A program made the translations under genes and the position numbers. 64,000 bases of DNA from contig FLMG01002456.1 of NCBI GenBank assembly GCA_900088475.1, positions 173,286 through 237,285 of the forward strand, read 5' to 3'. The notes under the pieces are model-generated. The model searched no databases, was not told where the DNA came from, and worked only from the letters and a program-made list of their open reading frames with translations. Origin of the DNA: Hyphochytrium catenoides (lineage: Eukaryota; Protista; Hyphochytriomycota). Shown here one piece after another: positions 15,758-19,391 of the stretch (position 1 is its first letter; every line of letters starts with the position of its first letter).

Positions 15758-16937
15758 CTTTTCTAGCTCCACCGGCACAATCGGAGGTGGTGGTGGAAAG
15801 CAGACCTCATTTACAAGCCTGCCGCCCTAGATTAGACGCTGTAGCAGGCTTGCATGGCACAGACATAGCTTACCTATAGAAGAACAGTACTCTGCAACGG
15901 CGGAAGAACTGGTTAGTACCTACATCGCGAAAGTTGTAGACGCGATACTTACATTGGGAGTGTGAGGACCAAAGCGTAGATGTTGATAAGATAGATGTAC
16001 ACTAGTAAACAGATATTAGTCGCTTGTTTATCGTATTAGCCAACGTAGCTGTGGCCGATCAAACCTTCATCTAGAGCTTGAGTAACCGTGAACAGTGATA
16101 TCTCCATGCTAATCCACCAGGAAAAATTGAGGGCATGTAGGAATGTTCCCCAGAATTTACGAGGATTGATCTCCTGCACTCTCTTGATTATGAACATCTT
16201 TCCTCAGCGACTATGATGCCGACAGAGCTCACCCTTCCTCCACTATGCAATACAGTCTTGGCCGACCCTAGGCAGTTTAGGATCGCCAAAACAGCTGTCA
16301 GGCGGAGTGAAAGGTTAACGCTCAGTGATCCAAACCTGAGAAGCGCTGTGACTCTCCCGCTCTTGGATCTCTTGGCGATGGGGCGGCTTGCAAGAATCGT
16401 CGGCCCATCCATACCAGCTGACGCTCCAAGCTGTCTAAGCTGTCTGCGACAACTTTTCATCGTCCACACGTAGTTCGAGTGGGACAGGCAGGACAACCTC
16501 TCGTCGGTTAGCAGCTCTAAGAAACGGCCTCACTCACTCCAAGAGTGGGTGGGTCATGTCATTTATCATAAAATATACCTCCTTTCACGGGGTGGGTAGG
16601 CCTTCTAATGTCAAACGAAACGACATCCACTGATGAGTTTGATGCTGCGCTCCTCCAATTTTCTGATAGGGCCCCGTCCTCCAACTAACACTCTTAGGCC
16701 AGAGCCCAGCCTTCACAGCTCCCCGTCCTTCGGAACTCATCACTGCGCCTCCTCACTTCTGCAGACCTTCCCACTCTTACTTTCCTGGTCTCTTCAAGGC
16801 TACCTTCCCACTCCATATTGATCCGGTAGCCATCGACTTCTAGAGTGATTCAGTACGATATATAGTCCTAGAGAGCTCGATCCCTCGACAAGTGGAAAGT
16901 TTTAACATAAATTGTCGGACTAGACATCCAAGCCTGG

Positions 16938-19175
16938 ATGGAGCAGCTTGCGTGCTCCGACGCTGACAGGGCTCCGAGCAGTCAGTCGAGCACCCGCTTT
17001 CAGAGTTTCAAGCTTGAGCATGTTTCTCAACTACTCGAAGATACTCTAGTCCATCAGAACGAAAAAACCGTCGCAAACAATACCAAGGACTGCTTCTCAA
17101 GCGATGATGCAATTAGCGTACTCATCAGGTACGGCGTCTGCAACAACACGAAAGATGCCCAGACGATTTGCGAAATGCTGCTACGAGATGGGTGCATTCG
17201 ATCAATATGTGCGGAACAGCAGGCTTTTTCTGCCGGCCAGCCCACCTGGTTTCAATTTGTCCGTGGGCCTCCGCATTCACCAGTAAACTTGGGAAGTGGA
17301 ACTCTCAGTGACGCCGAGAGCCAGTGCTTCAGCGATCAGGAGCTTGAGGGCCGGACGTCTGTTCTCGACCAAGCGCCAGTCCAGCCACTGCCGAATGGGA
17401 TGCTACTGCCATCACAGTCACACATGGCAGCCATTGCTGGTAGAGCGGACGGCCCGGAGAGAAGAAGGGGCATACTTGTGAAAGAATCTCCAGCGGAGCA
17501 ACAGTTACCCTCATGGCTGGTTGTAACTGTTCATTCTGCGCACTTCCAGTCTTGTGCATTTGATGTTGATGCATTCGCTGTTGTATATGCCTTTCAAAGC
17601 CGCACCAGGAAGCGGAGATATCTTGGGAGGACTCCGATCATGTATGGTTCTATTACTCCAGCTTGGGAAGCTGACATTGGGTGCTATGTTAAGGAGACAG
17701 ACGCTACAGCTATACTGGTCGAGGTATGGCATCGTAAGGAGAGTGATAAGTATTATCTTGGCCATGTGGCTTTGAAGCCATGGGCTCATAAGGGTGAGCT
17801 CAGGTGGTACGAGCTTCAGGGCCCGACAAGACGAAAGATGTCAACCTTCTCTTCAGGGAAAATATTGATAGGCTTCCGCCAGACGGGAGGAGACGAAGAG
17901 ATCACAATTGCGGCACAGCCTAGTGTGAGACTATCGAGGCTTACTACTGTCCTGCGTGAATGCACATTTTTCTCTTCTATGGCAGCCGTAAGCTCAGCCT
18001 ACCCCTTCAATGCTGCGGTGAATTATGTGGTAGCAGGTAGAGAGTTACTTCGGTCAATCTATGCTGGAGAGCGGAGCCAGCTAGAGGATGCCAGTGAAGT
18101 TTGCAAGATATCCTGGTATATCTTCGCAAAGGTGGTCGAAAAGAATGCGGCATTTATTTCTGGTGCAGTACTTTTGGAAGATCCTGGCTTTCGCCTCTTC
18201 AACGCCTTGTCCCCTTTAGGTTACTCTAGGGCTTTTAAGGGCACAAACAGAGATGTGGCTGAATATTCCGTCAGTACGTTTGGATCCAGTCACTTTGTTG
18301 ACTATATTCGCTTCTCGATGAAGCGAGGGGCATGGTATATGCCTCAAAACAACGTCGTCTACCGTCTAAGTGGAGACTCATCATCCCTAGGCTATTATCA
18401 GGTAAGGACGGAGCAAAGGCACAATGAAGTGGGAGACGACTGCTAAGTATCCTTGATTCCTGTACAGGTTGGCATTGACATTAACGCAAGGCCTTTGAGC
18501 CCGTACGAATTAGGACTCTTCTGTGGCAAGTCTCATATACTGTTCGGGAAGCTACCCCTGAAGTCAGAATCTGAACAGAGAGACTGGCTTTTCTTTAAAC
18601 CTGAACTCTTCGGAACGAAGACTGCCACCGACCAATTGAGGCATGGGATTGAGTATCTTAAGTCAAGGAATCAGCGTCCTGTGTCAAGCGAAGCTCAGAA
18701 AGCATGTGCTGCTGCTATGAAAGAGGTCGGACTTCTGCACCAGTGCGCAAGTACCAGAAAGGAGAAGATTGACAAGGGGTACCTAGAGGACTTCCGGAAC
18801 ATCGTAACGCTAGCATACCGGACTTTGGGTTTCAAAGTCCTGCGAACTGAGCTTACAGAAGAAGAGTTACTCCAGCGAGCTGCGGTGCTTGGCATATCTT
18901 TCATGACAAATGTGGTATCCTCAATACTCTCAAAACTAGCGGAGCGAAGTACGAAGCAGAATGAGACAATTTTCTGGCGTCCCCCAGCCACAGACAAGGA
19001 TTCCCTCATCATAAACACCGTCTTGAAGCTCGGTGTAAGTTTCCAAGAAAGAATATGCTGCAGTGAACTTAACCTGGATCATCTGGAGGTTCGATTCGGA
19101 CACGAGGTTATATTAGATCTACAAGAGATCACTTCTGACATAGGAGTAAACAAAAGCATATCAAGAGCAAAGTAA
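16938..19175 (+). CDS. DEP-domain + C2-domain protein with an uncharacterised C-terminal enzyme-like domain (2 exons, intron about 18402-18467)
   Basis: DEP-like: DCFSSDDAISVLIRYGVC..AQTICEMLLRDGCIRSI..F..WFQF. C2-like: LVVTVHSA..DAFAVV..LGRT..ITPAWE..ILVEVW..YYLGHV..WYEL. CAG|GTAAGG...TACAG|GTT joins YYQ|VGID in frame. Confidence 0.8.
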
Positions 19176-19349: not shown

Positions 19350-19391
19350 NNNNNNNNNNNNNNNNNNNNNNNNNNNNNNNNNNNNNNNNNN
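19350..19391. other. Assembly gap (N run)
   Basis: Run of N characters. Confidence 1.

Follow-up and report, generated by a model that had tools for sequence, protein, structure and literature searches.

The window analysed here, a stretch of 64,000 nucleotides from Hyphochytrium catenoides (contig FLMG01002456.1, positions 173,286 to 237,285 of the forward strand), carries on its + strand a gene of two exons (window positions 16938-18401 and 18468-19172). Its product of approximately 723 residues combines a DEP-like and a C2-like region with an unnamed C-terminal domain of approximately 380 residues. The parts of the gene are the following (window positions; E, expectation value):

16938..18401, + strand: exon 1, 488 codons, with the ATG at 16938 and an in-frame stop at 16908-16910, 27 nucleotides 5' of the ATG
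17076..17258, + strand: DEP-like region, residues 47-107, sub-threshold match to PF00610 (E 1.1e-4, 22.5 bits)
17514..17843, + strand: C2-like region, residues 193-302, degenerate, without an SDPY-type calcium loop
17937..18401, + strand: N-terminal part of the unnamed domain, residues 334-488, three helices and the first strands, phmmer E down to 2.5e-33, motifs W..A....K..F.SG, EDP, YSR and FGSSH
18402..18467, + strand: sole intron, 66 nucleotides, GT..AG, with an in-frame TAA; the junction is contiguous in homologues
18468..19175, + strand: exon 2, 235 codons (18468-19172), then the TAA stop at 19173-19175
18468..19133, + strand: C-terminal part of the unnamed domain, residues 1-222 of exon 2, library-wide best E 6.6e-18, motifs GIDI, HILFGK, FFKPELFG, H, RKE, LGISFM (helical bundle) and LDHLEVRFGHEVIL

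The open reading frame (ORF) that begins at the ATG ends at 18446; another ORF, frame-compatible with it, extends from 18453 to 19175. At the splice sites the letters read TAT TAT CAG/GTAAGG...CTGTACAG/GTT GGC ATT GAC (slashes mark the exon borders), and the resulting GYYQ/VGIDI junction is uninterrupted in homologues, the protein P0004 reading GYYQLGIDI in the alignment. All searches were run with the two exon pieces separately rather than with a joined protein. With both pieces the same homologues were recovered in colinear order (phmmer, E down to 2.5e-33 and 1.3e-25), residues 341-501 of P0004 being matched by the exon-1 piece and residues 512-700 by exon 2. Order and E-values are far beyond chance, and homology confirms the junction, since the last part of exon 1 and all of exon 2 hit one set of proteins colinearly.

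A preliminary description of this DNA had listed an ordered series of motifs in the unnamed domain, and all of them are present at their places in the translation. The positions are:

18108-18125, + strand: ISWYIF
18153-18170, + strand: FISGAV
18174-18188, + strand: LEDPG
18219-18230, + strand: GYSR
18279-18293, + strand: FGSSH
18468-18482, + strand: VGIDI, preceded across the splice by the Q that ends exon 1 at 18401
18531-18551, + strand: SHILFGK
18588-18617, + strand: LFFKPELFGT
18639-18656, + strand: RHGIEY
18753-18767, + strand: TRKEK
19074-19115, + strand: LDHLEVRFGHEVIL

The family profile is matched colinearly and over its full length, with 181 bits (profile positions 2-142) and 222 bits (positions 141-349). 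Across 22 eukaryotic and 31 Dependentiae sequences, approximately 16 residues, mostly glycine or polar ones, show little or no variation, while the aligned eukaryotic and Dependentiae sequences share only about 20-30% identity. The invariant set comprises W, G (of SG), D (of EDP), S-x-H, G-x-D, G, F-x-K-x-E-x-x-G, H, R-x-E and G; in addition, a C-terminal D....R.G.E is invariant in the separate eukaryotic and Dependentiae alignments. All invariant residues of the family are intact in the two pieces of the window protein, among them S450, H452, D492, K532, E534, H547, R585, E587, D692, R697 and E701 (numbered over the summed exons). We infer from this pattern an active site, of which such conservation is what one would expect, and the motif series, for which the preliminary description had suggested a catalytic site, is conserved in the homologues and looks catalytic there as well.

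The domain had also been described as unnamed, which agrees with every database consulted: sequence searches of Pfam, NCBIfam and the PDB with both exon pieces came back blank for it, and the family profiles gave no match to PDB sequences. Likewise, no Pfam match for the domain was obtained with 31 Dependentiae and 10 chlamydial members, nor did the Dependentiae set match anything in NCBIfam. A word-index protein search with either exon piece gave no matches, and with the family profile it added only a few more unnamed members. The structure prediction and Foldseek search that had been proposed as a check were run on a homologue, P0004, using its domain (residues 335-710) and a family alignment of 30 rows. 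They yielded a confident model (predicted local distance difference test score, pLDDT, 88.8; predicted template-modelling score, pTM, 0.89) and no fold match. The model has three helices at the N-terminus and a strand bearing D....R.G.E at the C-terminus; its other elements are a small mixed sheet and a four-helix bundle. With the full P0004 model, the best Foldseek row in the PDB had only E 0.042 at a template-modelling (TM) score of about 0.1, the ESM Atlas structure search remained at TM <= 0.27, and the fold searches found no structural match over the alpha/beta core. The ESM Atlas feature search gave scores of 0.80, a level often reached by shuffled proteins. Going by the P0004 model and the sequence searches, the domain family appears to be one without a detectable sequence or fold relative.

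The sole structural match that stands out is A0A0N9QY92 (Foldseek against BFVD, E 2.3e-3, probability 0.94), an uncharacterised protein of Chrysochromulina ericina virus CeV-01B. Its length of 397 residues is close to that of the domain and 338 columns are aligned, but the TM-score is only 0.28 at 13% identity, and the match was not confirmed by sequence. Scans of IMG/VR with the eukaryotic profile and with the members P0013 and P0022 gave nothing. By its structure, A0A0N9QY92 may belong to the family as a giant-virus representative.

Several known families were considered and rejected on motif order or spacing, and their folds were not returned by any of the searches: type II PI4K, for its similar motifs GSS..F and FKP..E; the LnaB-type S-HxxxE motif; PD-(D/E)xK nucleases; and PAP2, metallophosphatases and Pol-beta nucleotidyltransferases. 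The SelO/YdiU and ACAD11 rows of the Foldseek output (TM about 0.1) are noise.

Regarding the two N-terminal modules, the Pfam gathering scores are 32.7 bits for DEP (PF00610) and 22 bits for C2 (PF00168). The DEP-like region of the window protein rises to 26.5 bits in a six-frame search, which is also below the cut-off, and weakly matches the DEP domain of DEPTOR in the PDB; at the equivalent position of a paralogue on contig C557 of the same genome, DEP reaches 36.1 bits and thus exceeds the cut-off. The C2-like region matches PF00168 over residues 195-291 (E 1.7e-3, 19.0 bits, sub-threshold) and aligns with the C2-bearing region of P0004 (BLASTP E 0.001, 25% identity over 122 residues). This alignment sits at the same position relative to the unnamed domain, and C2 is among the precomputed Pfam matches of P0004. 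Strong C2 domains lie directly upstream of the unnamed domain in the closest homologues. Both modules named in the preliminary description are present only as sub-threshold matches, more weakly than its heading suggested. Calcium-dependent C2 domains carry an acidic calcium-binding loop with a D..G.SDPY-type motif after strand 2. In the pairwise alignment this motif is absent from the window protein, where the KDFGGSSDPYV of P0004 is replaced by SCAFDVDAFAVV; because the calcium-loop motif is missing, the C2-like module is probably calcium-independent.

A library-wide HMMER search with exon 2 (1.84 billion sequences) returned 25 representatives at E<=1e-3, the best at 6.6e-18, whose source names say nothing beyond 'hypothetical protein'. 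All but one look eukaryotic (protist-like), the 25th, P0023, being bacterial. The 24 eukaryote-like members are found mostly on short, transcript-like contigs, one of them in an NCBI assembly record. Above the Pfam cut-offs, their partner domains are C2 (P0002, P0005, P0016, P0061), PH (P0016), GYF (P0003, P0008) and WW (P0005), while zinc-finger-like heads or hydrophobic tails of further members were read by eye only. An SH3-like tail of P0001, likewise read by eye, was not confirmed by Pfam and was dropped. The closest relatives of the window's unnamed domain are P0004, P0014, P0016, P0002 and P0061 (PH-C2-X and C2-X layouts, X being the unnamed domain; from metagenomes and metatranscriptomes), at 37% identity at best. 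C2 lies directly upstream of the domain in these proteins, at the place of the C2-like region of the window protein; they differ from it in having PH in place of DEP and a canonical C2 well above the cut-off. Of the one paralogue in the same genome, on contig C557, only fragments could be matched exon by exon. Its modules stand in the same order (first DEP, next a C2-like piece, last the unnamed domain, whose motifs are GKIPPK / FLFLKPELWGT and LDHLEFRFGNEVILD), but the part that encodes the domain is divided among many exons over about 4 kb, compared with one intron in the window gene. As a side observation, the contigs of P0013 and P0053 (L006-L009) are AT-rich, compact and apparently intron-free, and the member adjoins genes with weak matches to the hormone-receptor domain (HRM); the source of these contigs may be either a protist or a large virus.

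The bacterial representative P0023 is encoded on a compact contig of 8.8 kb that also carries genes for ankyrin-repeat proteins and for a prolyl-tRNA synthetase; this synthetase shares 59-66% identity with its counterparts in Dependentiae/Babeliales genomes. Close relatives of P0023 were sought in the species genomes, and none were found. Profile searches of bacterial genomes gave the following distribution:

Dependentiae: 42 of 261 genomes with a profile match, a single genome having up to 7, often in tandem
Chlamydiota: 29 of 401 genomes with a profile match, all of them genomes of 1.5-3.6 Mb; the phylum was reached through a Simkania plasmid record
Desulfobacterota: 2 of 401 genomes with a match, D. 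vulgaris and one further genome, three copies
Bacillota (control): 0 of 251 genomes with a match

NCBI names among these members are 'Candidatus Babeliales hypothetical protein' and 'Protochlamydia naegleriophila hypothetical protein'. The preliminary description had named Dependentiae/TM6 among bacteria with a similar motif series; this is correct, since profile search and NCBI names, including that of the Babeliales protein, confirm the taxa. Tandem arrays of two or three members occur in Dependentiae at G246:C1:854936-861161, G247:C12:68332-74084, G094:C1:13813-16691 and G207:C58:68442-77535, as expected for expanding effector families. Two Dependentiae members are fusions, one with a DnaJ domain and one with ankyrin repeats. 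In two further loci (L012, L018), the prolyl-tRNA synthetases are 61-64% identical to that of the P0023 contig; the titles 'uncultured Pseudomonadota bacterium' look mislabelled, the genomes (G224, G197) being filed under Dependentiae.

Signal peptides were called on complete ORFs by a simple hydrophobic-window heuristic. A signal-peptide-like N-terminus was present in 23 of the 25 complete Dependentiae ORFs, the other two looking like misses of the start codon or of the heuristic; by the same heuristic, none of the 10 chlamydial ORFs has such a start, their N-termini being polar. Searching plasmids by tblastn, with the protein from Protochlamydia as query, led to the megaplasmid pDV of Desulfovibrio vulgaris Hildenborough (also Nitratidesulfovibrio vulgaris). 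Its product DVU_RS16555 (WP_014524689.1; 826 residues) scores 123.5 bits against the bacterial profile and 45.6 bits against a mostly eukaryotic one. Like the window protein, it contains the complete domain with all invariant motifs; unlike it, it is bacterial, lacks DEP and C2, and is encoded in a type III secretion cluster. The gene directly follows the CesT-family chaperone gene DVU_RS16550 (E 7.4e-26) at the end of the sctN-sctR cluster, and because of this position its product is presumably injected rather than resident. The type III genes of pDV have been described as two sigma-54-dependent operons (PMC4641369). The second Desulfobacterota genome contains two tandem pairs of a CesT gene and a family member beside FHIPEP/SctV, an SseC-like gene and a chaperoned RGS gene. 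With three chaperone-member pairs in two genomes, there is good contextual evidence from the sequences that the Desulfobacterota members are injected effectors. The term 'effector-like' used in the preliminary description fits these copies behind CesT genes in type III loci and the signal peptides of Dependentiae.

In the same locus of that second genome, the chaperoned RGS gene encodes a 571-residue protein (L094:7966-9678; G1029:C8). Its RGS domain is of eukaryote type (PF00615, E 2e-16), and its N-terminus is weakly SicP-binding-like. The gene adjoins CesT-type chaperone genes, one of them at L094:7478-7927, and by its sequence the protein is a candidate for injection into the host and regulation of G-protein signalling there.

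An unrooted maximum-likelihood tree was built from 53 rows and 315 columns, in which the window gene was represented by its exon-2 piece. All 22 eukaryotic sequences form one clan, split from Dependentiae with 100/100 support. Within it, the window piece is sister (87/87) to a clade, itself supported with 100/97, that consists mostly of C2- or PH-C2-bearing proteins plus P0062. In a quick tree of three groups, with 11 chlamydial rows added and two long branches dropped, the eukaryotes were again one clan (99), and 10 of 11 chlamydial and 28 of 29 Dependentiae rows grouped with their own kind; the order among the three groups was not resolved. The sequences indicate that eukaryotic and bacterial copies separated long ago and that the window gene is no recent import, since the eukaryotes form a single clan (100/100) and a many-intron paralogue exists. 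The argument for horizontal acquisition that the preliminary description had drawn from the single intron is not supported, as the C557 paralogue has the same DEP-C2-X layout with many introns.

Taken as a whole, the data are best explained, and with moderate confidence, by a membrane-recruited, enzyme-like domain of an uncharacterised protist/bacterial family. The DEP-like and degenerate C2-like modules would bring the C-terminal domain of about 380 residues to membranes, where the S-x-H, G-x-D, K-x-E, H, R-x-E and D....R.G.E residues would form one active site, so that the domain would act as an enzyme on a membrane-bound substrate inside eukaryotic cells. This substrate would most likely be a phospholipid or phosphoinositide head group, or else a membrane-anchored signalling protein, and our guess for the chemistry is a hydrolase or transferase reaction on either. 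The lipid kinase, phosphatase and hydrolase activities that the preliminary description had named for assay are guesses as well. Bacteria that live in or attack eukaryotic cells would use the same family as an exported protein, in the form of Sec-signal-bearing paralogue arrays (Dependentiae), of signal-less proteins (environmental chlamydiae) and of CesT-paired genes (type III loci of Desulfovibrio). Membrane enzymes linked to C2 domains are well known from cPLA2, PTEN, PLC-delta and class II PI3K. They resemble the window protein in that C2 (with PH in the relatives) stands beside a catalytic domain, which is putative here; their catalytic domains, however, have neither sequence nor fold similarity to the unnamed domain. 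Alternatively, the domain could be a binding or regulatory module, such as a GTPase regulator or a sensor of lipid or ligand, with the invariant residues serving binding or folding. We consider this unlikely, as about a dozen residues with charged or nucleophilic side chains (S, H, D, K, E, H, R, E, D, R, E) stay invariant across lineages at 20-30% identity, which is more usual for active sites than for binding surfaces. Some points weigh against a membrane-recruited enzyme with exported bacterial relatives: DEP and C2 both remain below their Pfam cut-offs in the window protein, the modelled sequence is that of the homologue P0004 (335-710) and not the window's own domain, and no cofactor or substrate motif was recognised in the domain. 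Moreover, 44% of the coding sequences of Chromulinavorax (Dependentiae) already carry a signal peptide (PMC6561590).

With regard to the origin of the gene, an artefact is exceedingly improbable, whether as contamination with bacterial DNA or as a faulty assembly that joined a eukaryotic DEP/C2 gene to a bacterial one. A spliceosomal GT-AG intron lies inside the domain, the guanine-cytosine content across the gene (0.45-0.53) is within the range of its surroundings on a contig of >237 kb, a second, intron-rich paralogue has the same layout, and the window sequence groups with eukaryotic C2-bearing homologues. As the tree is unrooted, it does not tell the direction of transfer. An effector domain might have entered a protist lineage from bacteria in one ancient transfer, followed by fusion to C2, PH or DEP and by duplication. 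Such a course would account for bacterial copies that are commoner, more divergent and on longer branches (up to 7 matches, corresponding to 3-5 ORFs, per genome in three phyla), for the rarity of the eukaryotic family (24 representative clusters among 1.84 billion) and for its lack of any match in Pfam or PDB sequences. It is nevertheless somewhat doubtful: the eukaryotic clan is not nested in any bacterial group, the tree fits the reverse equally well, fast evolution of effector genes inflates bacterial divergence, and a recent version of the transfer is excluded by the intron-rich paralogue. The reverse course, for which the chances are not far short of even, is that intracellular or predatory bacteria captured a protist signalling enzyme as a 'eukaryotic-like' effector. 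Capture from eukaryotes is generally held to be the source of the Sec7, F-box, ankyrin and RGS domains of these bacteria. In line with this, only two phyla, both made up of obligate intracellular associates of protists, have the family at appreciable frequency among bacteria; otherwise it is sporadic, in type III secretion loci, in one of which a neighbouring chaperoned gene encodes a eukaryote-type RGS domain; the eukaryotic members, furthermore, have varied native architectures. On the other hand, the three bacterial groups are not nested within the eukaryotic clan, and the eukaryotic distribution looks narrow, the metatranscriptome-like matches being without a taxon. By analogy with other eukaryote-like effector domains, we lean slightly towards a eukaryotic rather than a bacterial origin.

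Thus far annotated only as 'hypothetical', the family is conserved, confidently folded and enzyme-like, and it is common to protists and to the export repertoires of Dependentiae, environmental chlamydiae and Desulfovibrio. As a tentative extension, the domain may be an enzyme of a new class and fold whose target in protists is a membrane lipid or a membrane-anchored signalling protein, and bacteria of at least three phyla would export copies of it (by Sec in Dependentiae, by type III secretion in chlamydiae and Desulfovibrio) against the same host target. If so, the DEP-C2 protein of the window would be the resident, host-side counterpart of an injected effector. Once identified, the chemistry could reveal both a new activity in conflicts between bacteria and protists and a membrane-signalling enzyme of stramenopile-like protists, and the family could provide a clean case of gene sharing between hosts and intracellular bacteria. 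Since effectors of Dependentiae are, to our knowledge, essentially unstudied, it is of interest that DVU_RS16555 and its chaperone offer a tractable member in a model sulfate reducer.

Finally, an assembly gap, visible as a run of N at window positions 19350-19391, lies about 175 nucleotides 3' of the stop codon and thus outside the coding sequence.

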